DNA from: Macrostomum lignano
Taxonomy: Eukaryota
Assembly: GCA_002269645.1 (NCBI GenBank)
Contig: NIVC01001385.1
Span: 219,539 to 283,538 of the forward strand
DNA length: 64,000 nt
Direction of reading: 5' to 3'
The translations under genes and the position numbers were made by a program. Position 1 is the stretch's first letter; every line of letters starts with the position of its first letter. Below the pieces are notes generated by a model, which did not search any database, was not told where the DNA came from, and saw nothing but the letters and a program-made list of their open reading frames with translations. Shown here one piece after another: positions 3,105 to 64,000 of the stretch.

Positions 3105-3269
3105 GACTACTTTGAGCAAGGATTAACAGAGCTTGCGATGCGTTCGGTCCTTAGAGAATAAGATAGCAATAGCGTTGAACGATGAAGCTCTAGTTGGTTG
3201 CTTGCTAAACCAGCACTTCACAATGCAATTGAAAACGGCAGCTTCGTGGGTTTAAATAGCGCTGTTTTC

Positions 3270-12940: not shown

Positions 12941-13699
12941 ATCCTGGCCTGCTTGGTTGTCACCCTTCCCATCGCCTTCATTTTTGATATCTACGTAGTC
13001 TGCTACTTCAGCTTCCACGAAATGTTACCATGGCAACACACCGTTCTGTACTACTATTCGGCTTTGCTTTACTACCCACCGGCCCTTTTACTGGCGATTA
13101 TTTTCATTGAGAACTGTTTCCTGATTCACAAGGTACGAGAGATCACCGCCAATAGAAAGAGGCTGGGCTCTGCTAAGGAATCTGATGACGGGCTAGTAAA
13201 CACAGTGATCTGCCTCGCTCTGTCGGTCTGTCTGCTTCTGTCTGCCTCGCTGACCTTCTTTGCCCAAACCAGCGAGTACGTTCTAACGCTGCTTTTTGGC
13301 GGAATCGATTATAACAGGGCCACCGTGTTGTGGGGAGTTCACGACATCGGCATCTCGACCATCATCATTGGCCAGTCCACCAACTGGATCCTGCTGGTGT
13401 GGAAGAATGCCAAGATTGGAAACGGTAAAGTACTGAAAGCCGGTGGATCAGAAGATGGCTACCACAGCCACAAGTTAAATTTGGATTTCATTACAGTGAG
13501 AGAAATTAGCACTAGCTAGAGGAGATAAATTGCATGACAGCAAGCAAAACTATTATTTTTGTTCTAGTACTTCTAGAACTTGAGAACTTCGACTGTTTTC
13601 AACTCGAAAAACTGATCAAGAAATAAAAGTCATATTACATCAAAAAAACTTTTTTGATCCAAGATACGCTTTTTATTCGGATAATTATTGCAATCGTTA

Positions 13700-16254: not shown

Positions 16255-16350
16255 TACCTGGATATCTCCCAGGTTTCTACCTGGGTATCTCACAGATTTC
16301 TACCTGGGTATCTCACAGATTTCTACCTGGGTATCTCACAGATTTCTACC
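16255..16350. repeat. Short 23-bp tandem repeat (GATTTCTACCTGGGTATCTCACA, ~3-4 copies)
   Basis: Read directly from the sequence. Confidence 0.8.
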
Positions 16351-16437
16351 TAATTTCACAGATTTCACAAATTTTTATATACCTTCATTTAGACTGAATA
16401 AATAATCAGTAAGCAGTCGTGGGACGTATCTGACACA

Positions 16438-16928
16438 CTACTCGTTGATTGGATCATTCGACTTCTCAACCTCGCTGCTCAAGCCGCTCTCGCTGTCCCT
16501 GTCAATCAACGATTTATTCGCCTCGTCATCTTTCCGATTGACGCACAGGCAGAAGAGCAGCAGGCCAAGCAGCAGCGGGATAGCCAGGAACACACCAAGC
16601 CACAGGTACATCAAGTCATTGCTCAGCTGACTGCTGCCTGCGTGGGAGTTGAGAAGTTATCGGGAAGCTGAGTTCGATTTGAAAGGATCGCTGGCACGGG
16701 GGTGCAGGTAGGTTGTGGGTAGGCAGCCAATCTAACAGCATGTAGAATCACCTGTGTGACTAACAGGTAAACAGTCGTCCATCAGCATGTAGAATCTCCT
16801 GTGTGTCTAACAGGTATTCAGCTACAGCAAGCAAAGACGATACTCACTAGCAGTCACGTATCCTGTTGCATTCGAATCGGACATATTGAAACCCAACACA
16901 GGTGGAGCTCCCGTAGAGATGCTCAACA

Positions 16929-17109: not shown

Positions 17110-17672
17110 CGCGCCGGATTTCTTCGTCGAGTGGAGACAAAGAAACCAACAGGTTTCTTGAGTGAAAGCACAAGAAAAATTGGAAGAAACGGGAAATGTT
17201 AAGAAGCAAGAGGGCGCAGCAGAAACCTCTTAGCAGTATAAATGAAACAAGAAAAGTCAGGCCTGTGCTATGCTAGCAATATGCAGCAGCTGTTGCCCTC
17301 TCTGCTTCCCAGAAGTAGCAAAGGGTGATTTCCTGTGCGAATCTCAGTCGCCCACTCCTTGGCCATGGCGATCATTAGAACGATAGAACCTGGGGTTGTA
17401 AACTTATACGAGCGTCACTATGGCTAGTAGACTCTAGAGAAATATATTATACCATTAAACTATTGGAAATAAAAAACAGTAAAGCCTCTTTACACCGTCA
17501 TGAAAGAAGGCCAGATATTGTGTGATCACATCAAATTATACTGCACTAAATTTGGTTCCTTTTTTAATTGGACGCGTGATTTGATGGCTCATTTGATGGC
17601 AGTTGTGAGTGTGGCGCAGAGCCCAACACAACACACTCAGTTATTAGGGGTCTTGAGTGCAGAAAAGAAAAA

Positions 17673-18412
17673 GAGGGGTGACATGCGCGACTGAGGACAG
17701 AGGCGAGATTGAAGAGCCAATCAGAAGGCAGTAGGGGAATGAAATACGAGCTAAAAAGGAGGGGTGGAGTGCGCGACTGAGGACAGAGGCGAGATTGAAG
17801 AGCCAATCAGAAGGCAGTAAGGGAATGAAATACGAGCTAAAAATGAGGGGTGGAGTGCGCGACTGAGGACAGAGGCGAGATTGAAGAGCCAATCAGAAGG
17901 CAGTAAGGGAATGAAATACGAGCTAAAAGGAGGGGTGGAGTGCGCGACTGAGGACAGAGGCGAGATTGAAGAGCCAATCAGAAGGCAGTAAGGGAATGAA
18001 ATACGAGCTAAAAGGAGGGGTGGAGTGCGCGTTTGAGGGCAAAGGCGAGATTGAAGAGCCAATCAGAAGGCAGTAAGGGAAAGAAATACGAGCTAAAAAG
18101 GAGGGGTGGAGTGCGCGACTGAGGACAGAGGCGAGATTGAAGAGCCAATCAGAAGGCAGTAAGGAATGAAATACGAACTAAAAAAGAAGGGGTGGAGTGT
18201 GCGACTGAGGAAAGAGGCGAGATTGAAGAGCCAATCAGAAAGCAGTAAGGGAATGAAATACGAGCTAAAAAGGAGGGGTGGAGTGCGCGACTGAGGAAAG
18301 AGGCGAGATTGAAGAGCCAATCAGAAGGCAGTAAGGGAAAGAAATACGAGCTAAAAAGGAGGAGTGGAGTGCGCGACTGAGGGGAGAGGCGAGATTGAAG
18401 AGCGAGATTGAA
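17673..18412. repeat. Tandem array of ~85-86-bp units (~8.5 copies), each with a CCAAT box and a GT-box-like motif
   Basis: GAGCCAATCAG at 17717, 17803, 17889, 17974, 18059, 18145, 18231 and 18317. GGGGTGGAGT occurs in most units. Confidence 0.9.
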
Positions 18413-19710: not shown

Positions 19711-21699
19711 CAATAAAATCAGCAATTTTAGATGATTTTTTAGTATATAGGACTGTACTGTTGACAAGTATTTTGAGGTGTTTCAAGTCCGAATTGTTAA
19801 ACTTATTGATGTCTTAAATGAAAGGGCATATGTTACTGCCTATTCTGCGCCAAAATAAGCATCTTACGATCAATAGCGTGCACAGGAGATACATTGAAAA
19901 ATGGGCCATCAATGAAATTTTCGCCAATTCTGAGTCTTTCGTCCTTCTACTTAAGTAGTCCTTGAGTCAAGAATGTACACTGTACATAGAAGATTGTGCA
20001 GATGGTTGAAAACTTCATTTCCGATCGATTTCATTTTAGTCAGTGATAAGAATGTTTCTTATAATTTGCATTTACACTACCGTCCTAAAAGTAGTATCAT
20101 TCTTGGTCCCCACAGCGAGATAGGGAGTGACCTATCTAGTTCTATAGTATCTGTGCTTTATCCTAGATATCCTGTTCAAATTTATCTGGGGAGCACAATT
20201 GAAGTTCCGACTAGCACTTTAACAGGAAGTGAAATTCACTTTGGGCAGGTCCCATTTTCGTAAGGGATCTCTGGTCTCGCAGTCCTCATTGCTTCGCAGG
20301 CCAGTTTATGGTTTGCTATTCTTATCTATGGCAGGGTGCGTTTTGATTCTGGATTGGAAATTTCTACATAGTACATTAGTTTTTGTTTGAGTAGTGCCAT
20401 TTGAAGCTGCTGTAAAAGGGACTTTGTAGAGTTATCTGCCTTCTGGTCTCCGGTGTCTCGTAAATTCCAGTTCAAACTAGCTTTGTGTGTTCTGATTGAA
20501 TTCGCTAGCTACTCGTTCATGTCGACAGTTTTGTATTATTTCGCTATTCATTTAAATGCTGTAAGGCCAGACAGGACTGAACTAGACAGAGAGTGACAGA
20601 AAGCATGCAGAATAAACAGAGACGAGAGCAGCTGACTAGATGAATGAGGTTTCGCCATAGACAAATTCGCTCGAAAAGAATCAGTCTGAAAAAGTCACAT
20701 TAAGCATCAAGAACAGCTTACGAACTTTCGCCAGAACTTTGCCTACTTGCCGGTTTCTGGTAGCAGTCCATGAACAAATGGAACAAATAGCTTGATAAAA
20801 ATGTGCATTGTATTGTATATTAGACAGAAATAACTGCATTTTTCAGCACTACCATTCCAAGGAAAACAACTGACAGACGTTCCTTGAAATGCATTCTGAA
20901 GCGAAACTGCACTTCCGTGTACATTATCTTTTAATTATTGATTGCAGCCTTGACGTCATCTGGCACGTCTTCAGAGCTTCTCGTGCTTACTGCATGTACG
21001 AGTACAGTGTGGGTAGCACCAGGCCGTTGAGCCGCCTCTCCGGTTGGCATCGACCCACCGGACTGTACGTTACAAGACGCTTAGCTGGGACATCGATTGA
21101 CCCAATGATGCATTGAAACAACAAACTCCTTCTTCCTGCAGCACACAGCCCTGGAGATAGCAGAAATTGAGATCTGAAGTTGGTTGTTTGATGGAGAGCG
21201 CTTTCACGTGACTGCACAGCTCTATTTCAAAGCTTGATGTCTCAATCGAAATGTTAATGCAGGGCGCGGTCAAAATGGTGTATGGTGGCGTCGATTTAAG
21301 TCATCTTTTGTCCCTTCAGTTATCTCAGAAGCTGAATTCGGTAAAATGCTTTGAGAGCCATCCAATTTCGTTAATTTCCGCTAAAAGCATCGAACCACTC
21401 AGCTTTTGTAGAGTTAAGACTGTTGAACTGAACATGTAAAACAAAAAGCCGCAAATGGAAATCGCCCAGTGTTGCACGCACCACCATTGACACGCAAAAA
21501 TTGGGCGGGGCTACTGCTCGGGGCGATGAAAAAACCCATATAAACCTATTTAAACCCATAAAACTGACGTTCTCAATTGCAGGGCCGAGTGCTGGATAAG
21601 CAGACTACCAACTAGAGCTTCAAGTTGAAGACTTTTGCTATCTTATTTTCCGATGAGCGAAAGTGTCACAAGTCCTGTTAATCCTTGCTCAAAGTAGTC

Positions 21700-22788
21700 A
21701 TGAGTAACGCGTCAAGCGCTGTCAACTATATTTTTGTGGACTCTGTCGACTATATAGTGTCGGATTGTCAAAGTGGGGACCCGAACAGAACGGCGACTTG
21801 CACTGTCAACACCGTCCTGGGTGCCATCACGGGCCTGGTTCTGCCTGTTTTCATTGTCTCCGGTCTCGTGTTCAACGCTCTCATAGTGTACATCAACCTG
21901 GTCAAACAACCGTGGACTCGACAGAATGTGTACATCAGCATAATTGCGGTCACAGACAGCTGCAACATCATCGTGAACGGCTTCATGTGGATGTTCTTGG
22001 CCAAGGGCTTGCCATGGTTAACCAACGGATCCGTCGGTTATGTACATCTTAACGACGGAGACGTGCAGTGTAGATTTGCGAAATATTTTGAGCACCTGTG
22101 CCACCTAACATCGACTGCAGTGTTTCTGCTAATGGTGACTGACAGGACTCTAAGCCTGTACTTTCCGTTCAAATTTCAGAGCATCAGCGGAAAGGCTGCG
22201 ATGAAGGCCGGGTTATTAGTGATCCTGGCCTGTATGGTTGTCACCCTTCCCATCGCCTTTATCTTTCACTGGATAATTTATGAGAGCTACATAGTCTGTT
22301 ACTACAGCATGCTCGAAATGTTACCATGGCAACACACCGTTCTGTACTACTATTCGGCTTTGCTTTACTACCCACCGGCCCTTTTACTGACGGTTATTTT
22401 CATTGAGAACTGTTTCCTGATTCACAAGGTACGAGAGATCACCGCCAATAGAAAGAGGCTGGGCTCTGCTAAGGAATCTGATGACGGGCTAGTAAACACA
22501 GTGATCTGCCTCGCTCTGTCGGCCTGTCTGCTTCTGTCTGCCTCGCTGACTTTCTTTGCCCGAACCAGCGAGTACGTTCTATCTCTGCTATTTGGCGAAT
22601 ACGATTCAGAAATAGGCACCGTGTTGTGGGGAATTCACGACATCGGCATATCAATGATCATAATTGGCCAGTCCACCAACTGGATCCTGCTGGTGTGGAA
22701 GAATGCCAGGTTCCGTCGGCTTCTATTGGAGACGGTAAAATGCAGGAAACCGGTGGATCAGAAGACGGCTACCACTGGCACAAAATAA
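21700..22788 (+). CDS. Intronless rhodopsin-like orphan GPCR, copy 3, intact (362 aa from MSNAS)
   Basis: ORF 21685..22788 with ATG at 21700. It has the same seven-TM motifs as copy 1 and a near-identical sequence apart from ECL2, ECL3 and the C-tail. Confidence 0.9.
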   Translation: MSNASSAVNYIFVDSVDYIVSDCQSGDPNRTATCTVNTVLGAITGLVLPVFIVSGLVFNALIVYINLVKQPWTRQNVYISIIAVTDSCNIIVNGFMWMFLAKGLPWLTNGSVGYVHLNDGDVQCRFAKYFEHLCHLTSTAVFLLMVTDRTLSLYFPFKFQSISGKAAMKAGLLVILACMVVTLPIAFIFHWIIYESYIVCYYSMLEMLPWQHTVLYYYSALLYYPPALLLTVIFIENCFLIHKVREITANRKRLGSAKESDDGLVNTVICLALSACLLLSASLTFFARTSEYVLSLLFGEYDSEIGTVLWGIHDIGISMIIIGQSTNWILLVWKNARFRRLLLETVKCRKPVDQKTATTGTK

Positions 22789-25080: not shown

Positions 25081-46501
<21,421 letters not shown>

Positions 46502-47803
46502 GTGAGTCTGTCAACTTATGAACATCTGCAAATTCCAGGGGCCAAACTGATGGGCAGAGCAGCTCAGAGGTGCATGTAAACGGGTCTTGTGCACGAAAAT
46601 GTACGTGCCTGGAAGATTGGAAAGTCAAAGGGCCGCTGTAAACCCTGTGTGAGTGTGTGTGTGAGTGTGTGTGTGTGTGAGTTTGTGCATTAGGCATTTC
46701 TTGGGACAAGCGTGTATAAACTGACCCGTGCTATTAGGACCAAAAATGTGTTGGGCCAGGCCCAATATGTGCGTCCCGACACTTCTAAAAATCAAGGCTA
46801 CTAAATTAAAAAAATATTCGTTCGAACCGTCGTTCGATTCCCTTTTCAGAAACCAAACAACAGAAACCATATTTCTTACGATACATGAGTAATTTAGCGA
46901 TTAACAATGTCCCAACAGGTTAGGAAAATCATGCAAAACCATTTTTGGTTCAATAGAACAATTGGGACTTTAATCATACTTTCATGTCTCGTCTTTTTAT
47001 CATGTAATATTCTAAAAGGTCTACTTAAAGTAAAGCTGAATGCTTAATAAGGAGCCTGTCTAAAGCTGAAGAGATCAGATATCATTTGGCAGCGTGGTCG
47101 TGGCTACATAAGTTTTCCAGGATGTTTTGCTGTAAGAACTGTTAGTTTATCTCATATACACTCTAATCTATAAAATTCTACATTCTAATTGTAAAATTTT
47201 CAACTCTGAAGTATACTAAAATTGGGACAATGTTCAACACTACTAACACTTAGTAACTTTATCGCTCCACTACAGGTGTATTGTTTCTATTGTTCCAACG
47301 TACTCTTCTCCCTATTTCACCTATCAGCGATTCGCGAGCATATTAATATAGAGCTTAAAATTTTAACAACCACAATTAAAATTCTTGCATTCTTTTTCTT
47401 ACGGAGAGATTACAGAGCAAAATAAGCCCCTAGGCCTCAATCCCTCTCTCACAAAACGTTTTGGCCAGGCTAAACAGCTTGGTAAAGAACTTTGTCCCAG
47501 CTTCGATCGATAATCGAGCTAACGCGCGTGTGTACATTCTGAAGTGTGGGGACACGCACAAATAAAACCCAATCAACCTTCTCTCCAGGCCAATTGAGTG
47601 TACATTCAGAAGTGTTAGGACAGCCAAGCCACCCCTATTTAGAGCCCCCACAAACCTCTTTCAAAGGCCAATCGGAAGAACCAAACTAAATCTAGATTGA
47701 GACAATTTTGTACAATACATTGACTTCCCGATACTATTCTATTTACTATAAGCCATTCTGAATTTGATCTAGTCAAAATACTCGTAGCTACATACTTAAA
47801 ACA

Positions 47804-48586
47804 ATGCGGCAGAAGGCCGCTAAGAAGCTGAAGGCCCAAAGAAAAGTAAGAAAGAGGCCACTAGAGGTTAATGGCCATGCCAACCGAAGAGTGGAAGTGA
47901 AATTTGATAAAAGGCATCCCGCCTACGGCCAGACCAACGTTGTATATCTAAGCGACCTAAAGTTTAAAGGTCAACTATGCCATGGAACACGAGTCGTGAT
48001 GCAGTGGAAGGGAAAGGAGTGGAGCGGCACGGTGACTAACATGTAAGTGACATTAAAAAAAACTATATCTTCCTATACTAGTCTTATTGATTTCTAAATA
48101 ACACAATTACGTGCACACTGTACTTTGCGTAAATTAACACAAATATGTAATTTACTGCAGATACATTGATGCAGACCCACTACCGTTTGAAGCCGTTACT
48201 AAAGGGCTACCAACTCTAACAGGTATGTATGCCTATATTAAACATTCAATTACTTATCCACGAAGAGTATACTCATAAAGACTATCAATCTTACTTCTTA
48301 CTTATCAATGCCCGAAAAAATAGCAATGATGTTTAGGTGAAAAGAGATCCCTTAAATCAATTTTCAATTTTATAGAGGAACAATTAGCAAATCGAAACGT
48401 CTCATATAGTGGCCGTGCGTTTGAAAAATACTACATTGGTAAGAAAAAACATAATACTCTAAATCTTAAATGTACCTCCGTAAAAGCCTTGAAATTCCCT
48501 TGAAAGCGAAAACTAAAACTTTGTAGAGATGGAAGAAAAGCAATTTCGCAGCATCTTCAAGCTTAAAAAACATCGATCCAATGCAG
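47804..48586 (+). CDS. 5' exons of the tyrosine-recombinase-like gene (47804-48042, 48161-48222, 48376-48438, 48527-48586)
   Basis: ATG at 47804. The exons are open and phase-compatible (2, 1, 1, 1) with GT-AG boundaries. The joined protein is MRQKAAKKLK..WKGKEWSGTVTN-IYIDADPLPFEAVTKGLPTLT-EEQLANRNVSYSGRAFEKYYI-EMEEKQFRSIFKLKKHRSNA. It ends in phase 1, matching the repeated exon. Confidence 0.62.
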
Positions 48587-48762
48587 GTACTTTGACTGCA
48601 GAAACTGTATTTCACATAGAAAAGCACATATTAACTATATTATTTACACATCAAACGTAGAAAAGAAAAGCACAAAAAAAACATTTTTAGTGGCAACGGT
48701 CGGACAGAAAAACAAACACATTGCACTGGTATATACAAGCAAAGCTCAAATGTGGAGCAATC

Positions 48763-51700
48763 ATTGGGACAACATTGTGCGGATGTGATGTTTGAGGCAT
48801 TTATTGGGACGCACTTAATGGGACATGGAGTCTGTTATTTTTAACGCGGCTCTGGCTGTGACTAGAAAATGGTTCTTGTAGTTGAGCCAGCAAAGCATAG
48901 CTCTCTCTAAATAAACAAAACAGAATAGTAGCTTTCTAAGTAGCTCGAGTTTGAGTTTGGGAATCTGTGAAACTTTGCTCAGCCAATGATTACGTTCATG
49001 AAGTGTGTCTACACTACACAACTCCTTTCACACAGCTTCTGAAGTCGAGAGTTCCGCTGACGCGTCGCGGATTGAGCCCAACTTGAATGCGGTCTCCGCA
49101 AGCACAGACGCCACTGGTTCAAGCCTTGTCGCTGAACTAGCTAGTGCCATTCAGCCTGCTCAACAGCAGCCTCCAGCCGGCTTCAGCCAGACAGTTAGTC
49201 AGCTCCCAAGTGGTGCTACAGAAAGTCATTCAAGCGAAAGTGCAAATGCTAAGAGGAAACGGCGATCTGCTCAAGGTGAGCACTGCATGAGCATTGCTTT
49301 GTCTGCATGAAGGTACATGTACTTTAAGCGGGAGTGTTTGGGAGCCTTGGCAAATAAGGCAATGGATATTTTGGGCGGGCATCGGCAGGACAGAAAAACA
49401 CATACACTTGGGCACTTATTGGGACAACATTGTGCGGATGTGATGTTTGAGGCATTTATTGGGACGCACTTAATGGGACATGGAGTCTGTTATTTTTAAC
49501 GCGGCTCTGGCTGTGACTAGAAAATGGTTCTTGTAGTTGAGCCAGCAAAGCATAGCTCTCTCTAAATAAACAAAACAGAATAGTAGCTTTCTAAGTAGCT
49601 CGAGTTTGAGTTTGGGAATCTGTGAAACTTTGCTCAGCCAATGATTACGTTCATGAAGTGTGTCTACACTACACAACTCCTTTCACACAGCTTCTGAAGT
49701 CGAGAGTTCCGCTGACGCGTCGCGGATTGAGCCCAACTTGAATGCGGTCTCCGCAAGCACAGACGCCACTGGTTCAAGCCTTGTCGCTGAACTAGCTAGT
49801 GCCATTCAGCCTGCTCAACAGCAGCCTCCAGCCGGCTTCAGCCAGACAGTTAGTCAGCTCCCAAGTGGTGCTACAGAAAGTCATTCAAGCGAAAGTGCAA
49901 ATGCTAAGAGGAAACGGCGATCTGCTCAAGGTGAGCACTGCATGAGCATTGCTTTGTCTGCATGAAGGTACATGTACTTTAAGCGGGAGTGTTTGGGAGC
50001 CTTGGCAAATAAGGCAATGGATATTTTGGGCGGGCATCGGCAGGACAGAAAAACACATACACTTGGGCACTTATTGGGACAACATTGTGCGGATGTGATG
50101 TTTGAGGCATTTATTGGGACGCACTTAATGGGACATGGAGTCTGTTATTTTTAACGCGGCTCTGGCTGTGACTAGAAAATGGTTCTTGTAGTTGAGCCAG
50201 CAAAGCATAGCTCTCTCTAAATAAACAAAACAGAATAGTAGCTTTCTAAGTAGCTCGAGTTTGAGTTTGGGAATCTGTGAAACTTTGCTCAGCCAATGAT
50301 TACGTTCATGAAGTGTGTCTACACTACACAACTCCTTTGACACAGCTTCTGAAGTCGAGAGTTCCGCTGACGCGTCGCGGATTGAGCCCAACTTGAATGC
50401 GGTCTCCGCAAGCACAGACGCCACTGGTTCAAGCCTTGTCGCTGAACTAGCTAGTGCCATTCCGCCTGCTCAACAGCAGCCTCCAGCCGGCTTCAGCCAG
50501 ACAGTTAGTCAGCTCCCAAGTGGTGCTACAGAAAGTCATTCAAGCGAAAGTGCAAATGCTAAGAGGAAACGGCGATCTGCTCAAGGTGAGCACTGCATGA
50601 GCATTGCTTTGTCTGCATGAAGGTACATGTACTTTAAGCGGGAGTGTTTGGGAGCCTTGGCAAATAAGGCAATGGATATTTTGGGCGGGCATCGGCAGGA
50701 CAGAAAAACACATACACTTGGGCACTTATTGGGACAACATTGTGCGGATGTGATGTTTGAGGCATTTATTGGGACGCACTTAATGGGACATGGAGTCTGT
50801 TATTTTTAACGCGGCTCTGGCTGTGACTAGAAAATGGTTCTTGTAGTTGAGCCAGCAAAGCATAGCTCTCTCTAAATAAACAAAACAGAATAGTAGCTTT
50901 CTAAGTAGCTCGAGTTTGAGTTTGGGAATCTGTGAAACTTTGCTCAGCCAATGATTACGTTCATGAAGTGTGTCTACACTACACAACTCCTTTGACACAG
51001 CTTCTGAAGTCGAGAGTTCCGCTGACGCGTCGCGGATTGAGCCCAACTTGAATGCGGTCTCCGCAAGCACAGACGCCACTGGTTCAAGCCTTGTCGCTGA
51101 ACTAGCTAGTGCCATTCCGCCTGCTCAACAGCAGCCTCCAGCCGGCTTCAGCCAGACAGTTAGTCAGCTCCCAAGTGGTGCTACAGAAAGTCATTCAAGC
51201 GAAAGTGCAAATGCTAAGAGGAAACGGCGATCTGCTCAAGGTGAGCACTGCATGAGCATTGCTTTGTCTGCATGAAGGTACATGTACTTTAAGCGGGAGT
51301 GTTTGGGAGCCTTGGCAAATAAGGCAATGGATATTTTGGGCGGGCATCGGCAGGACAGAAAAACACATACACTTGGGCACTTATTGGGACAACATTGTGC
51401 GGATGTGATGTTTGAGGCATTTATTGGGACGCACTTAATGGGACATGGAGTCTGTTATTTTTAACGCGGCTCTGGCTGTGACTAGAAAATGGTTCTTGTA
51501 GTTGAGCCAGCAAAGCATAGCTCTCTCTAAATAAACAAAACAGAATAGTAGCTTTCTAAGTAGCTCGAGTTTGAGTTTGGGAATCTGTGAAACTTTGCTC
51601 AGCCAATGATTACGTTCATGAAGTGTGTCTACACTACACAACTCCTTTGACACAGCTTCTGAAGTCGAGAGTTCCGCTGACGCGTCGCGGATTGAGCCCA

Positions 51701-54700
51701 ACTTGAATGCGGTCTCCGCAAGCACAGACGCCACTGGTTCAAGCCTTGTCGCTGAACTAGCTAGTGCCATTCCGCCTGCTCAACAGCAGCCTCCAGCCGG
51801 CTTCAGCCAGACAGTTAGTCAGCTCCCAAGTGGTGCTACAGAAAGTCATTCAAGCGAAAGTGCAAATGCTAAGAGGAAACGGCGATCTGCTCAAGGTGAG
51901 CACTGCATGAGCATTGCTTTGTCTGCATGAAGGTACATGTACTTTAAGCGGGAGTGTTTGGGAGCCTTGGCAAATAAGGCAATGGATATTTTGGGCGGGC
52001 ATCGGCAGGACAGAAAAACACATACACTTGGGCACTTATTGGGACAACATTGTGCGGATGTGATGTTTGAGGCATTTATTGGGACGCACTTAATGGGACA
52101 TGGAGTCTGTTATTTTTAACGCGGCTCTGGCTGTGACTAGAAAATGGTTCTTGTAGTTGAGCCAGCAAAGCATAGCTCTCTCTAAATAAACAAAACAGAA
52201 TAGTAGCTTTCTAAGTAGCTCGAGTTTGAGTTTGGGAATCTGTGAAACTTTGCTCAGCCAATGATTACGTTCATGAAGTGTGTCTACACTACACAACTCC
52301 TTTGACACAGCTTCTGAAGTCGAGAGTTCCGCTGACGCGTCGCGGATTGAGCCCAACTTGAATGCGGTCTCCGCAAGCACAGACGCCACTGGTTCAAGCC
52401 TTGTCGCTGAACTAGCTAGTGCCATTCCGCCTGCTCAACAGCAGCCTCCAGCCGGCTTCAGCCAGACAGTTAGTCAGCTCCCAAGTGGTGCTACAGAAAG
52501 TCATTCAAGCGAAAGTGCAAATGCTAAGAGGAAACGGCGATCTGCTCAAGGTGAGCACTGCATGAGCATTGCTTTGTCTGCATGAAGGTACATGTACTTT
52601 AAGCGGGAGTGTTTGGGAGCCTTGGCAAATAAGGCAATGGATATTTTGGGCGGGCATCGGCAGGACAGAAAAACACATACACTTGGGCACTTATTGGGAC
52701 AACATTGTGCGGATGTGATGTTTGAGGCATTTATTGGGACGCACTTAATGGGACATGGAGTCTGTTATTTTTAACGCGGCTCTGGCTGTGACTAGAAAAT
52801 GGTTCTTGTAGTTGAGCCAGCAAAGCATAGCTCTCTCTAAATAAACAAAACAGAATAGTAGCTTTCTAAGTAGCTCGAGTTTGAGTTTGGGAATCTGTGA
52901 AACTTTGCTCAGCCAATGATTACGTTCATGAAGTGTGTCTACACTACACAACTCCTTTCACACAGCTTCTGAAGTCGAGAGTTCCGCTGACGCGTCGCGG
53001 ATTGAGCCCAACTTGAATGCGGTCTCCGCAAGCACAGACGCCACTGGTTCAAGCCTTGTCGCTGAACTAGCTAGTGCCATTCGCCTGCTCAACAGCAGCC
53101 TCCAGCCGGCTTCAGCCAGACAGTTAGTCAGCTCCCAAGTGGTGCTACAGAAAGTCATTCAAGCGAAAGTGCAAATGCTAAGAGGAAACGGCGATCTGCT
53201 CAAGGTGAGCACTGCATGAGCATTGCTTTGTCTGCATGAAGGTACATGTACTTTAAGCGGGAGTGTTTGGGAGCCTTGGCAAATAAGGCAATGGATATTT
53301 TGGGCGGGCATCGGCAGGACAGAAAAACACATACACTTGGGCACTTATTGGGACAACATTGTGCGGATGTGATGTTTGAGGCATTTATTGGGACGCACTT
53401 AATGGGACATGGAGTCTGTTATTTTTAACGCGGCTCTGGCTGTGACTAGAAAATGGTTCTTGTAGTTGAGCCAGCAAAGCATAGCTCTCTCTAAATAAAC
53501 AAAACAGAATAGTAGCTTTCTAAGTAGCTCGAGTTTGAGTTTGGGAATCTGTGAAACTTTGCTCAGCCAATGATTACGTTCATGAAGTGTGTCTACACTA
53601 CACAACTCCTTTCACACAGCTTCTGAAGTCGAGAGTTCCGCTGACGCGTCGCGGATTGAGCCCAACTTGAATGCGGTCTCCGCAAGCACAGACGCCACTG
53701 GTTCAAGCCTTGTCGCTGAACTAGCTAGTGCCATTCCGCCTGCTCAACAGCAGCCTCCAGCCGGCTTCAGCCAGACAGTTAGTCAGCTCCCAAGTGGTGC
53801 TACAGAAAGTCATTCAAGCGAAAGTGCAAATGCTAAGAGGAAACGGCGATCTGCTCAAGGTGAGCACTGCATGAGCATTGCTTTGTCTGCATGAAGGTAC
53901 ATGTACTTTAAGCGGGAGTGTTTGGGAGCCTTGGCAAATAAGGCAATGGATATTTTGGGCGGGCATCGGCAGGACAGAAAAACACATACACTTGGGCACT
54001 TATTGGGACAACATTGTGCGGATGTGATGTTTGAGGCATTTATTGGGACGCACTTAATGGGACATGGAGTCTGTTATTTTTAACGCGGCTCTGGCTGTGA
54101 CTAGAAAATGGTTCTTGTAGTTGAGCCAGCAAAGCATAGCTCTCTCTAAATAAACAAAACAGAATAGTAGCTTTCTAAGTAGCTCGAGTTTGAGTTTGGG
54201 AATCTGTGAAACTTTGCTCAGCCAATGATTACGTTCATGAAGTGTGTCTACACTACACAACTCCTTTGACACAGCTTCTGAAGTCGAGAGTTCCGCTGAC
54301 GCGTCGCGGATTGAGCCCAACTTGAATGCGGTCTCCGCAAGCACAGACGCCACTGGTTCAAGCCTTGTCGCTGAACTAGCTAGTGCCATTCCGCCTGCTC
54401 AACAGCAGCCTCCAGCCGGCTTCAGCCAGACAGTTAGTCAGCTCCCAAGTGGTGCTACAGAAAGTCATTCAAGCGAAAGTGCAAATGCTAAGAGGAAACG
54501 GCGATCTGCTCAAGGTGAGCACTGCATGAGCATTGCTTTGTCTGCATGAAGGTACATGTACTTTAAGCGGGAGTGTTTGGGAGCCTTGGCAAATAAGGCA
54601 ATGGATATTTTGGGCGGGCATCGGCAGGACAGAAAAACACATACACTTGGGCACTTATTGGGACAACATTGTGCGGATGTGATGTTTGAGGCATTTATTG

Positions 54701-57700
54701 GGACGCACTTAATGGGACATGGAGTCTGTTATTTTTAACGCGGCTCTGGCTGTGACTAGAAAATGGTTCTTGTAGTTGAGCCAGCAAAGCATAGCTCTCT
54801 CTAAATAAACAAAACAGAATAGTAGCTTTCTAAGTAGCTCGAGTTTGAGTTTGGGAATCTGTGAAACTTTGCTCAGCCAATGATTACGTTCATGAAGTGT
54901 GTCTACACTACACAACTCCTTTGACACAGCTTCTGAAGTCGAGAGTTCCGCTGACGCGTCGCGGATTGAGCCCAACTTGAATGCGGTCTCCGCAAGCACA
55001 GACGCCACTGGTTCAAGCCTTGTCGCTGAACTAGCTAGTGCCATTCCGCCTGCTCAACAGCAGCCTCCAGCCGGCTTCAGCCAGACAGTTAGTCAGCTCC
55101 CAAGTGGTGCTACAGAAAGTCATTCAAGCGAAAGTGCAAATGCTAAGAGGAAACGGCGATCTGCTCAAGGTGAGCACTGCATGAGCATTGCTTTGTCTGC
55201 ATGAAGGTACATGTACTTTAAGCGGGAGTGTTTGGGAGCCTTGGCAAATAAGGCAATGGATATTTTGGGCGGGCATCGGCAGGACAGAAAAACACATACA
55301 CTTGGGCACTTATTGGGACAACATTGTGCGGATGTGATGTTTGAGGCATTTATTGGGACGCACTTAATGGGACATGGAGTCTGTTATTTTTAACGCGGCT
55401 CTGGCTGTGACTAGAAAATGGTTCTTGTAGTTGAGCCAGCAAAGCATAGCTCTCTCTAAATAAACAAAACAGAATAGTAGCTTTCTAAGTAGCTCGAGTT
55501 TGAGTTTGGGAATCTGTGAAACTTTGCTCAGCCAATGATTACGTTCATGAAGTGTGTCTACACTACACAACTCCTTTGACACAGCTTCTGAAGTCGAGAG
55601 TTCCGCTGACGCGTCGCGGATTGAGCCCAACTTGAATGCGGTCTCCGCAAGCACAGACGCCACTGGTTCAAGCCTTGTCGCTGAACTAGCTAGTGCCATT
55701 CCGCCTGCTCAACAGCAGCCTCCAGCCGGCTTCAGCCAGACAGTTAGTCAGCTCCCAAGTGGTGCTACAGAAAGTCATTCAAGCGAAAGTGCAAATGCTA
55801 AGAGGAAACGGCGATCTGCTCAAGGTGAGCACTGCATGAGCATTGCTTTGTCTGCATGAAGGTACATGTACTTTAAGCGGGAGTGTTTGGGAGCCTTGGC
55901 AAATAAGGCAATGGATATTTTGGGCGGGCATCGGCAGGACAGAAAAACACATACACTTGGGCACTTATTGGGACAACATTGTGCGGATGTGATGTTTGAG
56001 GCATTTATTGGGACGCACTTAATGGGACATGGAGTCTGTTATTTTTAACGCGGCTCTGGCTGTGACTAGAAAATGGTTCTTGTAGTTGAGCCAGCAAAGC
56101 ATAGCTCTCTCTAAATAAACAAAACAGAATAGTAGCTTTCTAAGTAGCTCGAGTTTGAGTTTGGGAATCTGTGAAACTTTGCTCAGCCAATGATTACGTT
56201 CATGAAGTGTGTCTACACTACACAACTCCTTTGACACAGCTTCTGAAGTCGAGAGTTCCGCTGACGCGTCGCGGATTGAGCCCAACTTGAATGCGGTCTC
56301 CGCAAGCACAGACGCCACTGGTTCAAGCCTTGTCGCTGAACTAGCTAGTGCCATTCCGCCTGCTCAACAGCAGCCTCCAGCCGGCTTCAGCCAGACAGTT
56401 AGTCAGCTCCCAAGTGGTGCTACAGAAAGTCATTCAAGCGAAAGTGCAAATGCTAAGAGGAAACGGCGATCTGCTCAAGGTGAGCACTGCATGAGCATTG
56501 CTTTGTCTGCATGAAGGTACATGTACTTTAAGCGGGAGTGTTTGGGAGCCTTGGCAAATAAGGCAATGGATATTTTGGGCGGGCATCGGCAGGACAGAAA
56601 AACACATACACTTGGGCACTTATTGGGACAACATTGTGCGGATGTGATGTTTGAGGCATTTATTGGGACGCACTTAATGGGACATGGAGTCTGTTATTTT
56701 TAACGCGGCTCTGGCTGTGACTAGAAAATGGTTCTTGTAGTTGAGCCAGCAAAGCATAGCTCTCTCTAAATAAACAAAACAGAATAGTAGCTTTCTAAGT
56801 AGCTCGAGTTTGAGTTTGGGAATCTGTGAAACTTTGCTCAGCCAATGATTACGTTCATGAAGTGTGTCTACACTACACAACTCCTTTGACACAGCTTCTG
56901 AAGTCGAGAGTTCCGCTGACGCGTCGCGGATTGAGCCCAACTTGAATGCGGTCTCCGCAAGCACAGACGCCACTGGTTCAAGCCTTGTCGCTGAACTAGC
57001 TAGTGCCATTCCGCCTGCTCAACAGCAGCCTCCAGCCGGCTTCAGCCAGACAGTTAGTCAGCTCCCAAGTGGTGCTACAGAAAGTCATTCAAGCGAAAGT
57101 GCAAATGCTAAGAGGAAACGGCGATCTGCTCAAGGTGAGCACTGCATGAGCATTGCTTTGTCTGCATGAAGGTACATGTACTTTAAGCGGGAGTGTTTGG
57201 GAGCCTTGGCAAATAAGGCAATGGATATTTTGGGCGGGCATCGGCAGGACAGAAAAACACATACACTTGGGCACTTATTGGGACAACATTGTGCGGATGT
57301 GATGTTTGAGGCATTTATTGGGACGCACTTAATGGGACATGGAGTCTGTTATTTTTAACGCGGCTCTGGCTGTGACTAGAAAATGGTTCTTGTAGTTGAG
57401 CCAGCAAAGCATAGCTCTCTCTAAATAAACAAAACAGAATAGTAGCTTTCTAAGTAGCTCGAGTTTGAGTTTGGGAATCTGTGAAACTTTGCTCAGCCAA
57501 TGATTACGTTCATGAAGTGTGTCTACACTACACAACTCCTTTGACACAGCTTCTGAAGTCGAGAGTTCCGCTGACGCGTCGCGGATTGAGCCCAACTTGA
57601 ATGCGGTCTCCGCAAGCACAGACGCCACTGGTTCAAGCCTTGTCGCTGAACTAGCTAGTGCCATTCGCCTGCTCAACAGCAGCCTCCAGCCGGCTTCAGC

Positions 57701-60700
57701 CAGACAGTTAGTCAGCTCCCAAGTGGTGCTACAGAAAGTCATTCAAGCGAAAGTGCAAATGCTAAGAGGAAACGGCGATCTGCTCAAGGTGAGCACTGCA
57801 TGAGCATTGCTTTGTCTGCATGAAGGTACATGTACTTTAAGCGGGAGTGTTTGGGAGCCTTGGCAAATAAGGCAATGGATATTTTGGGCGGGCATCGGCA
57901 GGACAGAAAAACACATACACTTGGGCACTTATTGGGACAACATTGTGCGGATGTGATGTTTGAGGCATTTATTGGGACGCACTTAATGGGACATGGAGTC
58001 TGTTATTTTTAACGCGGCTCTGGCTGTGACTAGAAAATGGTTCTTGTAGTTGAGCCAGCAAAGCATAGCTCTCTCTAAATAAACAAAACAGAATAGTAGC
58101 TTTCTAAGTAGCTCGAGTTTGAGTTTGGGAATCTGTGAAACTTTGCTCAGCCAATGATTACGTTCATGAAGTGTGTCTACACTACACAACTCCTTTGACA
58201 CAGCTTCTGAAGTCGAGAGTTCCGCTGACGCGTCGCGGATTGAGCCCAACTTGAATGCGGTCTCCGCAAGCACAGACGCCACTGGTTCAAGCCTTGTCGC
58301 TGAACTAGCTAGTGCCATTCCGCCTGCTCAACAGCAGCCTCCAGCCGGCTTCAGCCAGACAGTTAGTCAGCTCCCAAGTGGTGCTACAGAAAGTCATTCA
58401 AGCGAAAGTGCAAATGCTAAGAGGAACGGCGATCTGCTCAAGGTGAGCACTGCATGAGCATTGCTTTGTCTGCATGAAGGTACATGTACTTTAAGCGGGA
58501 GTGTTTGGGAGCCTTGGCAAATAAGGCAATGGATATTTGGGCGGGCATCGGCAGGACAGAAAAACACATACACTTGGGCACTTATTGGGACAACATTGTG
58601 CGGATGTGATGTTTGAGGCATTTATTGGGACGCACTTAATGGGACATGGAGTCTGTTATTTTTAACGCGGCTCTGGCTGTGACTAGAAAATGGTTCTTGT
58701 AGTTGAGCCAGCAAAGCATAGCTCTCTCTAAATAAACAAAACAGAATAGTAGCTTTCTAAGTAGCTCGAGTTTGAGTTTGGGAATCTGTGAAACTTTGCT
58801 CAGCCAATGATTACGTTCATGAAGTGTGTCTACACTACACAACTCCTTTGACACAGCTTCTGAAGTCGAGAGTTCCGCTGACGCGTCGCGGATTGAGCCC
58901 AACTTGAATGCGGTCTCCGCAAGCACAGACGCCATGGTTCAAGCCTTGTCGCTGAACTAGCTAGTGCCATTCCGCCTGCTCAACAGCAGCCTCCAGCCGG
59001 CTTCAGCCAGACAGTTAGTCAGCTCCCAAGTGTGCTACAGAAAGTCATTCAAGCGAAAGTGCAAATGCTAAGAGGAAACGGCGATCTGCTCAAGGTGAGC
59101 ACTGCATGAGCATTGCTTTGTCTGCATGAAGGTACATGTACTTTAAGCGGGAGTGTTTGGGAGCCTTGGCAAATAAGGCAATGGATATTTTGGGCGGGCA
59201 TCGGCAGGACAGAAACACATACACTTGGGCACTTATTGGGACAACATTGTGCGGATGTGATGTTTGAGGCATTTATTGGGACGCACTTAATGGGACATGG
59301 AGTCTGTTATTTTAACGCGGCTCTGGCTGTGACTAGAAAATGGTTCTTGTAGTTGAGCCAGCAAAGCATAGCTCTCTCTAAATAAACAAAACAGAATAGT
59401 AGCTTTCTAAGTAGCTCGAGTTTGAGTTTGGGAATCTGTGAAACTTTGCTCAGCCAATGATTACGTTCATGAAGTGTGTCTACACTACAACTCCTTTGAC
59501 ACAGCTTCTGAAGTCGAGAGTTCCGCTGACGCGTCGCGGATTGAGCCCAACTTGAATGCGGTCTCCGCAAGCACAGACGCCACTGGTTCAAGCCTTGTCG
59601 CTGAACTAGCTAGTGCCATTCCGCCTGCTCAACAGCAGCCTCCAGCCGGCTTCAGCCAGACAGTTAGTCAGCTCCCAAGTGGTGCCTACAGAAAGTCATT
59701 CAAGCGAAAGTGCAAATGCTAGAGGAAACGGCGATCTGCTCAAGGTGAGCACTGCATGAGCATTGCTTTGTCTGCATGAAGGTACATGTACTTTAAGCGG
59801 GAGTGTTTGGGAGCCTTGGCAAATAAGGCAATGGATATTTTGGGCGGGCATCGGCAGGACAGAAAAACACATACACTTGGGCACTTATTGGGACAACATT
59901 GTGCGGATGTGATGTTTGAGGCATTTATTGGGACGCACTTAATGGGACATGGAGTCTGTTATTTTTAACGCGGCTCTGGCTGTGACTAGAAAATGGTTTT
60001 GTAGTTGAGCCAGCAAAGCATAGCTCTCTCTAAAAAACAAAACAGAATAGTAGCTTTCTAAGTAGCTCGAGTTTGAGTTTGGGAATCTGTGAAACTTTGC
60101 TCAGCCAATGATTACGTTCATGAAGTGTGTCTACACTACACAACTCCTTTGACACAGCTTCTGAAGTCGAGAGTTCCGCTGACGCGTCGCGGATTGAGCC
60201 CAACTTGAATGCGGTCTCCGCAAGCACAGACGCCACTGGTTCAAGCCTTGTCGCTGAACTAGCTAGTGCCATTCCGCCTGCTCAACAGCAGCCTCCAGCC
60301 GGCTTCAGCAGACAGTTAGTCAGCTCCCAAGTGGTGCTACAGAAAGTCATTCAAGCGAAAGTGCAAATGCTAAGAGGAAACGGCGATCTGCTCAAGGTGA
60401 GCACTGCATGAGCATTGCTTTGTCTGCATGAAGGTACATGTACTTTAAGCGGGAGTGTTTGGAGCCTTGGCAAATAAGCAATGGATATTTTGGGCGGCAT
60501 CGGCAGGACAGAAAAACACATACACTTGGGCACTTTTGGGACAACATTGTGCGGATGTGATGTTTGAGGCATTTATTGGGACGCACTTATGGGACATGGA
60601 GTCTGTTATTTTTAACGCGGCTCTGGCTGTGACTAGAAATGGTTCTTGTAGTTGAGCCAGCAAAGCATAGCTCTCTCTAATAAACAAAACAGAATAGTAG

Positions 60701-61710
60701 CTTTCTAAGTAGCTCGAGTTTGAGTTTGGGAATCTGTGAAACTTTGCTCAGCCAATGATTACGTTCATGAAGTGTGTCTACACTACACAACTCCTTTGAC
60801 ACAGCTTCTGAAGTCGAGAGTTCCGCTGACGCGTCGCGGATTGAGCCCAACTTGAATGCGCGTCTCCGCAAGCACAGACGCCACTGGTTCAAGCCTTGTC
60901 GCTGAACTAGCTAGTGCCATTCCGCCTGCTCAACAGCAGCCTCCAGCCGGCTTCAGCCAGACAGTTAGTCAGCTCCAAGTGGTGCTACAGAAAGTCATTC
61001 AAGCGAAAGTGCAAATGCTAAGAGGAAACGGCGATCTGCTCAAGGTGAGCACTGCATGAGCATTGCTTTGTCTGCATGAAGGTACATGTATTTAAGCGGG
61101 AGTGTTTGGGAGCCTTGGCAAAATAAGCAATGGATATTTTGGGCGGGCATCGGCAGGACAGAAAACACATACACTTGGCACTTATTGGGACAACATTGTG
61201 CGGATGTGATGTTTGAGGCATTTATTGGGACGCACTTAATGGGACATGGAGTCTGTTATTTTTAACGCGGCTCTGGCTGTGACTAGAAAATGGTTCTTGT
61301 AGTTGAGCCAGCAAAGCATAGCTCTCTCTAAATAAACAAAACAGAATAGTAGCTTTCTAAGTAGCTCGAGTTTGAGTTTGGGAATCTGTGAAACTTTGCT
61401 CAGCAATGATTACGTTCATGAAGTGTGTCTACACTACACTCCTTTGCACAGCTTCTGAAGTCGAGAGTTCCGCTGACGCGTCGCGGATTGAGCCCAACTT
61501 GAATGCGGTCTCCGCAAGCACAGACGCCACTGTTCAAGCTTTGACACAGCTTCTGAAGTCGAGAGTTCCGCTGACGCGTCGCGGATTGAGCCCAACTTGA
61601 ATGCGGTCTCCGCAAGCACAGACGCCACTGGTTCAAGCCTTGTCGCTGAACTAGCTAGTGCCATTCAGCCTGCTCAACAGCAGCCTCCAGCCGGCTTCAG
61701 CAGACAGTTA
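48763..61710 (+). repeat. Tandem array of ~19.8 x 655-bp units; each unit = ~415-nt intron + 240-nt symmetric (phase 1-1) exon
   Basis: 655-bp periodicity in the ORF track (49005, 49660, 50315...). The first exon is 49036-49275, bounded by CACAG| and |GTGAG, and encodes ASEVESSADASRIEPNLNAV..NAKRKRRSAQ. Confidence 0.95.
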
Positions 61711-64000
61711 ATCAGCCCCAAGGTTGTCGCGAAATCGATCAGTTCCTTTGTGCACCTGTGGCGTATTGTTCTGAAGATGCAAACTTTGCGATTTTAAAAC
61801 CGGTCTCGAATCCGAAGTCGTGCTGTGAGCCACATTTTGGGGCTCTGGCTTTTGCTGCTGATGATAGTGATCCATATCATCTGGAAAGCAATACTGGAAC
61901 CGATTGTTCAGCTGGAGCTGTAGTGGGTTGCTCAAATTACGAGAATTTGGCCGCCGACAATTCGAATTTTTATCCTCAGATGAATGCCTTGTCTGTGGTT
62001 CAAGATTTTTCTGCGCATTCGATGCCGTCCCAACTCGTTGATTTTGTAACTGCGAAAGCTGAAGATGGTGATCAAGTGACCTTTTCGGCTAATGTCAATG
62101 TTAGTTCCGCGCGGATTGAAGAAGAAAGTGTCTCAGTTACTCTACCTGTTTCCTTGAAGCCTGAGGATGACGCAGGATGCAGTGTTGTTTTGCAGAAGCT
62201 TGTCAGTTCGCGAACAAAGCTTCATTACTGCAAATATTGTGGCAAAATGTTGACGAAAATCTCTCGGCACTACAAAACCGCTCATAAAAGCAGAGTCTGA
62301 CGTTAAGCGCTTGCAGCAGATCCGCCGTAAGTCCATTCGTAGAAAGGCATTTAAGGCCCTTGAAAGCGAAGGCGATTATATTCACAATAAAATGGTTTTG
62401 GCAAAACGAGAAGGTGAATTAATAATTGCAAGGAGACAAAAGGACGATGAAAATTCTCCTGGGAGTTTTCTTCCCTGTCATCGATGCTTTCAATTCATAA
62501 AGAAGGATCTTCTCTACCGCCACAGAAATGCATGCTCCGGTAGCCTATCTGAAATTATTAAGGAAGACGAGAATGACTCCGATGAAGACACTGAGAACTC
62601 TTCGCCCTCCGAGTCAGAGAGTGCAGAAGCGCGCCTAAAAAATCCTACGAACAATCACTACGTGCAGCTGTCTCGAATTCTGCTAAAAATCCAGAGCCTG
62701 CTTCAAACTTCTGGAACCAGATTCGGAACTCTTTAAGACAGTTCTCTCAAGACTCATTTGTGATGATCTGTTTGATACAATCTGCAAAGATGAGCTTTTA
62801 CTTCGTTTAGGTGATCGTTATTTGTCTAAGCAAAAAAAGGTGAACCAGGCAGCACGTGTCTAGTAAAATCAGGGATGCAGCTCGTGTTTTTATTCAGCTA
62901 CAGCAGTTGCATGGTGATTATAGCTTAAGACACTTTCTGCAACCACAGTATTTTGATGATTGGATCGAAGTTATCCGAAAGTTATCGAATGAGGCCCCAA
63001 CATTCGCACTACGCATGGTCATTCAATACCGCATCTGTGCAATATCCTAATCGGTGAAGCGATTAGGACTTCTAATGATGGCCTTAAAAAGTCCGCATCT
63101 GACTTTCTTGAGCTGAAAAATACTGAGTACCACCATCTCGTTACTGCGAAGAGCCTCAAGACAATAAGTGAAAGAGCAGCACGCTTGTGCAGGACTGTGT
63201 ACCGCTGACGGACGACATAGTAAAACTTTCCACTTTTATGAAGTCGGCGATTGTCGATAAAATCGAAGAGCTCAAGACAGGAACATTGGATTCAAATGTT
63301 CCTTTGTTGTACGTGAACTAGTCTACCTAATCATGACAAAACTAACTTTTTTCAACCGGCGCCGATCCAGTGAGATTTCTCAAATGGTAATGGCGATGTA
63401 GATGCAGCTTCGGCATCTCACACGCAGGATGACCTGCATCAGTATTTGACGCCACTCGAGAAGGAACTCGCCAGCAGGTTAAAGGTCATAAATATATCAG
63501 GCAAAAGAGGACGAATCTGTGCCTATCGTTATCGATCGAATTTGTTGGGATGGACTGATGTGCCTAAAAGACTGTCGCGAGGCTGCCGGTGTAAGCCGAA
63601 AGAACGTATTTGTGTTTGCGATTCCTGGCTATGAACAATCCGTCTACAGATGTCCTGTGGCAATCGACAAAGTAGTGAAAATGAGCTCACTCCAAACTGC
63701 AACGAGCGGATCTCCTTCGCTCAAGATTTTTAAGGAAGCATTGTGCGACTGTTTCGCAACTTCTTGACTTAAAAGACAATGAGCTAGATTGGCTAGCTCG
63801 CCATCTCGGCCATGATATACTGTCCACAGACAGTTCTACAGATTACATCAAATACTCTCGAGCTAGCAAAGGTTTCGAAGATTTTGGAGTTGATGGAGAG
63901 TGGGAACCTGAAGAAATTTAAAGGAAAGGGTCTGGAAGAAATAACATTAGAAGATTTATCAGAGCCGCCGTTGGATGACCATGATGAGACAGCAGAGTTA
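61550..64000 (+). CDS. Terminal exon: C2H2-like zinc finger + tyrosine-recombinase-like catalytic domain (Crypton-like); frameshifted in this sequence and truncated by the window end
   Basis: CKYCGKMLTKISRHYKTAH; EGDYIHNKMVL; LPCHRC..LYRHRNAC; FNRRRSSE (63351-63374); GKRGR (63500-63514); LRKHCAT (63730-63750); LGH (63805-63813); VHRQFY (Tyr 63837-63839). These follow the R..K..xxxR..H..Y order of tyrosine recombinases. The frameshifts are mostly single-base losses in homopolymers. Confidence 0.8.

Follow-up and report, generated by a model that had tools for sequence, protein, structure and literature searches.

A copy-number-variable exon-intron array, probably within the recombinase gene of a Crypton-like transposon, in a cadherin intron of Macrostomum lignano

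We examined a 64,000-nucleotide stretch of DNA from the flatworm Macrostomum lignano (contig NIVC01001385.1, positions 219,539 to 283,538 of the forward strand; hereafter the window), in which a tandem array of 655-bp units lies within an intron of a predicted cadherin gene. The array is most probably an exon-plus-intron repeat of variable copy number that forms part of the one long gene carried by a young, multi-copy DNA transposon of Crypton-like type. A preliminary description of this DNA had taken the array for a coding variable-number tandem repeat (VNTR); our analysis assigns it not to a free-standing host gene but to the recombinase gene of a multi-copy element that extends from 46646 to past the end of the window. 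In the proposed arrangement, the gene would run from exon 1 (ATG at 47804) through exons 2 to 4 and a variable number of cassette exons into a long exon encoding zinc fingers and a tyrosine recombinase, and each cassette would lengthen the N-terminus of the recombinase by 80 residues, a segment rich in S/A/Q/P that is predicted to be disordered and ends in KRKRR.

The 655-bp period appeared as the autocorrelation peak in the window, and the array was not reported by Tandem Repeats Finder because the longest period of that program is 500. The array opens with a 272-bp partial unit corresponding to the tail of an intron, followed by 19 full units spanning 49036-61451, a truncated fragment, and a last partial unit from 61550 to about 61720. 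Its components are as follows (all on the plus strand).

48764 to about 61720: tandem array of 655-bp exon-intron cassettes, 12,957 bp or 19.8 units, by autocorrelation and unit alignment.
49036, 49691, 50346, 51001, 51656, 52311, 52966, 53620, 54275, 54930: starts of unit exons 1-10.
55585, 56240, 56895, 57550, 58204, 58857, 59505, 60158, 60805: starts of unit exons 11-19.
51001 to 51240: representative unit exon, 240 nt, phase 1-1, its junction found in the protein models P0001-P0004 described below.
51241 to 51655: representative unit intron, 415 nt, gtgagc...cacag, with three copies of a 14-mer at 51377, 51417 and 51431.
61452 to 61549: truncated unit fragment of 98 bp (approximately the first 88 nt of the exon), in the window copy only.

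Each unit exon lies between a cacag/ acceptor and a CAAG/gtgagc donor (the slash marks the splice site) and codes for (A)SEVESS...ANAKRKRRSAQ; the array contains 19 CAAG/GTGAG donors and 21 CACAG/CTTCTGAAG acceptors. The preliminary description had specified a junction codon G/CT restoring Ala, an 80-amino-acid S/A/Q/P-rich peptide and a KRKRR ending, all of which we found as claimed, and its statement that the copies are nearly identical was borne out by the unit alignment. It had also placed acceptor and donor 240 nt apart in every unit, which is exact in 14 of the 19 units of the window while the remaining units deviate, and had counted 19 KRKRR motifs, for which we found 17 occurrences of the exact coding 15-mer and an intact reading frame in 12 of the 19 exons. 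The alignment has 39 variable columns, of which nearly all reflect 1-bp deletions that occur in one unit each and cluster in units 14-19. Probable true substitutions between units are confined to two sites, a P/Q codon and one C/G difference in the pyrimidine tract; this is too little variation for dN/dS to be estimated between units. The middle of the unit (the 3' end of the exon with the 5' end of the intron) was also sought elsewhere in the element, yielding a single above-chance match of 29 bp in the left flank.

To assess whether the units are spliced, we relied on existing protein models. A search with the open reading frame (ORF) downstream of the array recovered P0001, a 971-aa protein from the annotation of GCA_002269645.1 (Mlig_3_7) that contains two unit junctions and the whole ORF, and P0002, a M. 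lignano UniRef protein. P0002 and its cluster mates P0003 and P0004 contain 8-10 units joined at ...KRKRRSAQ/ASEVESS..., followed by the downstream ORF; a look-up of the contigs encoding P0002 gave no record. Gene annotation of Mlig_3_7 drew solely on RNA-seq and a de novo transcriptome, processed with StringTie, TACO and TransDecoder (PMC5730564), and P0001 therefore constitutes transcript-derived evidence for the unit junction. The proposal that the unit is an exon-intron module is thus upheld by the SAQ/ASEVE junction in RNA-seq-derived P0001 and in three independent UniProt models, whereas the accompanying expectation that annotators would miss the coding units is not, since existing M. 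lignano annotations already splice them.

Upstream and downstream of the array, splice sites and reading frame define the remaining exons of the predicted gene, again on the plus strand.

47804 to 48042: predicted exon 1, from the ATG to donor CAT/gtaagt, encoding a basic N-terminus MRQKAAKKLKAQRKVRKRP... (splice sites and frame).
48161 to 48222: predicted exon 2, 62 nt (splice sites and frame).
48376 to 48438: predicted exon 3, 63 nt (splice sites and frame).
48527 to 48586: predicted exon 4, 60 nt, ending ...KLKKHRSNA at a phase-1 donor (splice sites and frame).
61550 to 64000: start of the long last coding exon, comprising the final Q-type partial unit, about 170 residues without predicted structure, two zinc fingers and the tyrosine-recombinase core.

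The four upstream exons have canonical GT..AG introns and a total length of 424 nt, which delivers the phase 1 required by the unit exons. Because each cassette exon has 240 nt and is of phase 1-1, any number of cassettes keeps the frame. At locus L001 of Mlig_3_7 the final partial unit runs into an uninterrupted ORF of 890 codons. In the window, 14 indels of 1-2 bases break the long last exon; six other copies have it unbroken. The six Mlig_3_7 copies agree fully with one another across 2,282 bp of the ORF, and the window departs from them by these 14 indels and 1 substitution; this ratio of indels to substitutions suggests that the frameshifts in the window are long-read consensus errors rather than decay. 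The indels in window units 14-19 likewise look like assembly errors. We considered the possibility that the window copy is a decayed pseudogene and rejected it, given the six identical copies and the nature of the differences.

The same data bear on the alternative that the array is a non-coding satellite of the transposon, with the frame and splice-like sites as by-products, the protein models derived from pervasive or aberrant transcription, the repeat peptide functionless, and the units either neutral or acting in the DNA as a cluster of sites bound by the recombinase. The length of the reading frame is unexceptional: the unit frame is open from stop to stop for 102 codons, extending 11 codons past each splice site, and a longer open stretch, of 114 codons, runs along the opposite strand, so that ORF length alone is no proof of coding. 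Variation between units is too small for coding constraint to be tested, the repeat peptide is predicted to be disordered, has no Pfam match and has no relatives beyond these models, and each intron carries three copies of a 14-mer that is otherwise confined to the ends of the element. Against these observations stand a frame that continues from the ATG through four exons and the units into the recombinase, which needs the exact 240-nt, phase 1-1 geometry; the finding that 60 of the 65 unit exons at the Mlig_3_7 loci have exactly 240 nt; and the presence of the junctions in transcript-derived models. We consider a non-coding origin unlikely.

The assignment of the array to a mobile element is supported by comparison of the window with other loci. 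P0001 is annotated on six contigs. At each of these six loci, similarity to the window begins in a (TG)n run and takes in 2.1 kb of unique sequence, then the array and the ORF. The element is thus found at seven or more places (the window and the six Mlig_3_7 loci) with >99% identity, and has a length of roughly 14-21 kb, or about 8.4 kb plus the array. Its position in the window is as follows.

46646 to 46687, no strand assigned: (TG)n run that bounds the element on its 5' side, where four copies turn identical; the precise position of the end inside this run is ambiguous.
46688 to 64000, plus strand: body of the Crypton-like element, continuing for about 3.6 kb past the end of the window to a second (TG)n run (>99% identity to six loci).

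The 5' flanks are unrelated among the window, L001, L002 and L003, as are the 3' flanks among L001, L003, L004 and L006. The boundaries are sharp: the common sequence stops about 5.9 kb after the array, in the second (TG)n run, and (TG)n was present at both ends of every copy examined. When the terminal 500 bp were compared in direct and inverted orientation, no similarity was found except the TG run; the element therefore lacks long terminal repeats (LTRs) and terminal inverted repeats (TIRs). A reverse transcriptase (RT) was sought among the ORFs of the complete copy L001 and none was found, the sole long ORF being the recombinase gene and the others being translations of minisatellites. The Rfam scan of the window returned no RNA family. 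In the 3' region of the element, past the window end, L001 contains minisatellites at 15004-15860 and 16083-16528 with units of 48 bp and 38 bp, respectively; the number of 48-bp units differs between copies of the element.

These comparisons also address the view that the array belongs to a free-standing host gene in the cadherin intron, in which a coding VNTR would give rise either to a nuclear repeat protein with multiple nuclear localization signals (NLS) or to a secreted polyprotein cut by a furin-like enzyme. The cassettes and spliced junctions are real, and KRKRR fits both the NLS and the R-X-K/R-R convertase patterns. However, the same 2.1 kb and 5.9 kb flank the array at seven loci with unrelated surroundings, and the frame passes from the upstream exons into the tyrosine-recombinase ORF; a host gene is therefore very improbable. 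As to the secreted form, the units do contain RKRR sites, but the strongly basic predicted N-terminus (MRQKAAKKLKAQRKVRKRPLEVNG...), as judged by reading the sequence, has no hydrophobic core or signal-like stretch. This signal-less, basic N-terminus, together with a C-terminus that is a recombinase, led us to reject the furin-processed polyprotein. A role of KRKRR as an NLS is plausible for a recombinase that would act in the nucleus and lacks a signal peptide: by the same reading, KRKRR fits the monopartite pattern K-K/R-X-K/R, and exon 1 adds another basic cluster. The motif may serve as a nuclear-import or DNA-contact patch.

The number of units differs between copies. Arrays fully spanned with unique flanks on both sides contain 9, 9 and 8 units (L001-L003), truncated arrays give lower bounds of 13, 17 and 10, and the window contains 19. 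All copies have a common layout, in which the units at the 5' edge and the last partial copy are of Q type and the interior units of P type. Such a layout would be expected from unequal exchange between interior units, by which the array would grow and shrink. It is possible, though in our view doubtful, that the arrays were collapsed or over-expanded during assembly and that the differences in unit number are unreal. The contigs of L004 and L006 start in or beside the array, the window copy has many consensus-type indels in its last units and ORF, and the published genome is known as repeat-rich and redundant. On the other hand, the 8-9-unit arrays are completely spanned, the array occurs in two or more independent assemblies or annotations, and an error of this kind would touch the unit count only and not the nature of the feature.

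We then analyzed the product of the downstream ORF. Pfam gave no match for the frameshift-patched pieces of the window ORF, a PDB sequence search with intact P0001 returned nothing useful, and a profile compared with PDB sequences matched zinc fingers only. An exhaustive HMMER search detected 5,414 related clusters, 739 of them at E <= 1e-30, which have in common a conserved core of about 410 residues and a second conserved region containing zinc fingers. The ten closest members that were looked up include proteins of a teleost, a beetle, a sea cucumber and a priapulid; the named ones among these ten are labeled 'uncharacterized', 'hypothetical' or 'unnamed protein product', and the rest are nameless. 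We could not find this recombinase family in named form. Across 46 aligned members, R697, E700, K744, R820, H846, H851 and Y855 are invariant and sit in the motifs FNRRRxGE, GKRGRxVP, LRKxxAT and HLGHDxxVHRxFY. The candidate catalytic residues R697 (with E700), K744, R820, H846/H851 and Y855 have the order and spacing expected in a tyrosine recombinase, with the roles assigned by pattern only. The Pfam family Phage_integrase (PF00589) was matched by 3 of the 46 relatives (best E 5.4e-6). The CryptonA signature DUF3504 was matched by none of the 46, making membership in CryptonA unlikely.

An AlphaFold model built with the family alignment had a predicted local distance difference test score (pLDDT) above 90 over approximately residues 315-850, and displayed the two-domain fold, core-binding plus catalytic, of tyrosine recombinases. 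The repeat units and the following 140 residues were unstructured in the model (pLDDT 30-40). In a Foldseek search against the PDB, the top six matches were XerH chains (404-426 aligned columns, probability 1.00), with type IB topoisomerases next, and the top five matches in a viral structure library were phage integrases with template modeling (TM) scores up to 0.54. We conclude that the ORF product, as modeled, is a predicted tyrosine recombinase that carries a CCHH and a CCHC zinc finger on its N-terminal side.

The unit intron and the ends of the element have a short motif in common. The 14-mer GCAYWTATTGGGAC (allowing up to 2 mismatches) occurs three times per unit intron, within 48757-61245, and the left edge of the array coincides with one copy. 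Two copies lie within about 125 bp of the 5' end of the element, one on each strand.

46694 to 46707, plus strand: subterminal 14-mer GCATTTCTTGGGAC, candidate recombinase binding site (motif scan).
46759 to 46772, minus strand: subterminal 14-mer, inverted (GCACATATTGGGCC) (motif scan).

One minus-strand copy (L001 17098-17111) lies about 40-90 bp from the 3' end, depending on where in the TG run the element is taken to end, so that copies at the two ends are inverted relative to each other. Outside the element the scan found none, either in the remaining 46.6 kb of the window or in the L001 flanks; 0.4-1.3 would be expected by chance. This distribution suggests that the 14-mer may be a binding site for the recombinase that has been multiplied by the array. 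An extension of this hypothesis is that the recombinase acts at the 14-mer, and that unequal site-specific exchange builds and resizes the array, altering the number of both its own modules and its binding sites, so that the element would have a self-modifying transposase gene; we regard this as distinctly unlikely. Each 38-bp unit of the 3' minisatellite contains TTGTTGGGACAGCC, which is related to the terminal 14-mer motif.

The element resides in sense orientation in an intron of the cadherin gene and begins 144 bp after the end of the preceding exon.

46160 to 46501, plus strand: last cadherin exon before the insertion, ending ...SYNVA/gtgagt in phase 0 (Pfam Cadherin E=6.5e-19).

L006 represents the same locus in Mlig_3_7, where about 72 bp separate the 3' TG run from the acceptor of the next cadherin exon, VYENVPSG.... 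Reconstructed from the 144 bp, a TG run and the 72 bp, the original intron would have measured about 0.25 kb; it now exceeds 20 kb. The two flanking exons corroborate the earlier placement of the array on the same strand in a phase-0 cadherin intron. The prediction that accidental inclusion would frameshift the cadherin did not hold: as 240 equals 3 x 80, a unit exon could be included in the cadherin mRNA without a frameshift, and its reading in phase 0 meets a stop after 16 codons (LLKSRVPLTRRGLSPT followed by the stop). The insertion fills the cadherin intron with same-strand splice sites, and a chimeric transposon-cadherin gene model has already been produced: P0003 (UniRef A0A1I8J6G4), labeled 'SANT domain-containing protein', joins repeat units, part of the recombinase and downstream cadherin exons (L006 12642-14947). 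The names 'Kazal-like' and 'SANT' on these public models are unsupported by anything that we observed.

Other cadherin introns, between 26573 and 45903, are nearly all filled by a different minisatellite each, with units of 12-36 bp and lengths up to 1.1 kb. They include a (TCTA)103 tract at 27658-28071, related 16-bp units at 26573-26986 and 28450-28868, and a 23-bp array with a 19-bp repeat at 31931-32983 that recurs at 39239-39969, which suggests a duplicated intronic block. Between cadherin exons, an ORF on the minus strand (41482-42117) encodes a clear fibrinogen C-terminal globular domain (Pfam E=7e-36); it is apparently a nested gene, lying within an intron of the cadherin.

Among known elements, the closest counterparts are the Cryptons, which encode a tyrosine recombinase without RT, have an intron-containing gene, lack terminal repeats and carry a matching short sequence at both ends (PMC3212892, PMC13465315, PMC9977147). 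Like the Cryptons (Goodwin et al. 2003; Kojima & Jurka 2011, PMC3212892), the M. lignano element has a tyrosine recombinase with no RT or other transposase, an intron-containing gene and no TIRs or LTRs, occurs at unrelated sites, and is flanked by one short sequence on both sides of the insertion. Under the model given in PMC9977147 and PMC13465315, Cryptons integrate by recombination between the element end and a matching target, and the M. lignano element would correspondingly integrate by recombination between its TG-rich end and a genomic TG microsatellite. It differs in being flanked by a TG microsatellite, where Cryptons have a 4-6 bp word, and in that its recombinase has two zinc fingers and no match to DUF3504. 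On sequence grounds we therefore term the element Crypton-like, set apart from typical Cryptons by the TG flank and the non-DUF3504 protein. The DIRS, Ngaro and PAT retrotransposons are also eukaryotic mobile elements that use a tyrosine recombinase; unlike them, the M. lignano element has no RT and no terminal repeats of the split or inverted kind. In endogenous nimaviruses, tyrosine recombinases with a C2H2-type zinc-binding region and an N-terminal SAM-like domain are encoded by multi-exon genes, and insertion is into simple, microsatellite-like repeats (PMC10871703). The M. lignano element likewise combines, in a eukaryote, a zinc-binding tyrosine recombinase, a multi-exon gene and insertion into a simple repeat, whereas the nimavirus enzymes belong to giant viral genomes with telomere-type or rDNA targets and the M. 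lignano element is small, has one gene and lies in TG repeats.

We found no described Crypton whose recombinase gene contains tandemly arrayed exon-intron cassettes. Tandem arrays within transposons are known, as are coding VNTRs built from such cassettes; we did not find their combination described. Kringle IV-2 of human LPA is the classical coding VNTR of exon-intron cassettes. The M. lignano array resembles it in having a unit of complete exon and intron, in the preserved frame, in the near-identity of units, in unit junctions present in gene models, and in a module number that varies after splicing (here from 8 to at least 19 units). LPA, however, is a host gene with folded kringles and allelic copy variation, whereas the M. 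lignano array encodes disordered modules within a transposon gene and varies between copies of the element. The 5' monomers of mouse L1 and the subterminal repeats of CACTA/En-Spm elements, which are bound by TnpA, are transposon tandem repeats with cis-acting sites. Like these, the M. lignano array is a variable internal or subterminal tandem array, with a short motif in common with the element ends. The L1 and CACTA repeats are non-coding, whereas each M. lignano unit adds a spliced coding exon and binding at its 14-mers is hypothetical.

Several points weigh against the interpretation of the array as part of a Crypton-like recombinase gene. Exons 1-3 and the junction of exon 4 with the first unit are predicted, and a word-indexed protein search for models carrying them was empty; this is a weak negative, as such searches are unreliable for repetitive queries and left a two-unit spliced peptide unmatched although P0002-P0004 contain it. 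Splicing rests on gene models, with their provenance taken from the methods of PMC5730564, and not on inspected reads, and translation of the repeats is putative. Consensus polishing across repeats may have made the copies look more perfectly identical than they are, the exact counts in long arrays may depend on the assembly, with two contigs breaking at or near the array, and mobility is inferred from the copies alone. As regards the recombinase, P0001 matches no Pfam recombinase model even when E values as high as 10 are allowed, the HxxR-box histidine (His II) was not identified, and the Foldseek E-values are modest (2e-3 to 2e-4), with TM scores of 0.4-0.55 relative to the target.

Elsewhere in the window, three closely related ORFs resemble rhodopsin-like receptors: 1947-3119 on the minus strand, and 10161-10745 with 12953-13519 and 21685-22788 on the plus strand (7tm_1 E=8.6e-6, below the Pfam cut-off). 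The middle one is seemingly split by an insert of about 2.2 kb, the ORFs of which (11342-12863) look retroelement-like. Frameshifted remains of an LTR-retrotransposon pol gene lie at approximately 6400-9900 on the minus strand (Integrase_H2C2 E=5e-14), and an 86-bp tandem repeat occupies 17668-18403 (8.6 copies, 94% identity).

If this interpretation is correct, part of the coding sequence of a transposon gene lies in a block that repeat-finders would label as satellite, and the recombinase is an unusual one, with an N-terminus assembled from a variable number of spliced cassettes. The family to which it belongs is very large, with over 5,000 clusters across animal phyla. The element may still be mobile, because its copies are essentially identical, and active Cryptons have so far been directly observed only in Chlamydomonas (PMC9977147). 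If active, the element would offer a tractable system for studying Crypton movement, and a tyrosine-recombinase transposon that targets TG repeats could become a genetic tool in M. lignano, a flatworm amenable to transgenesis.

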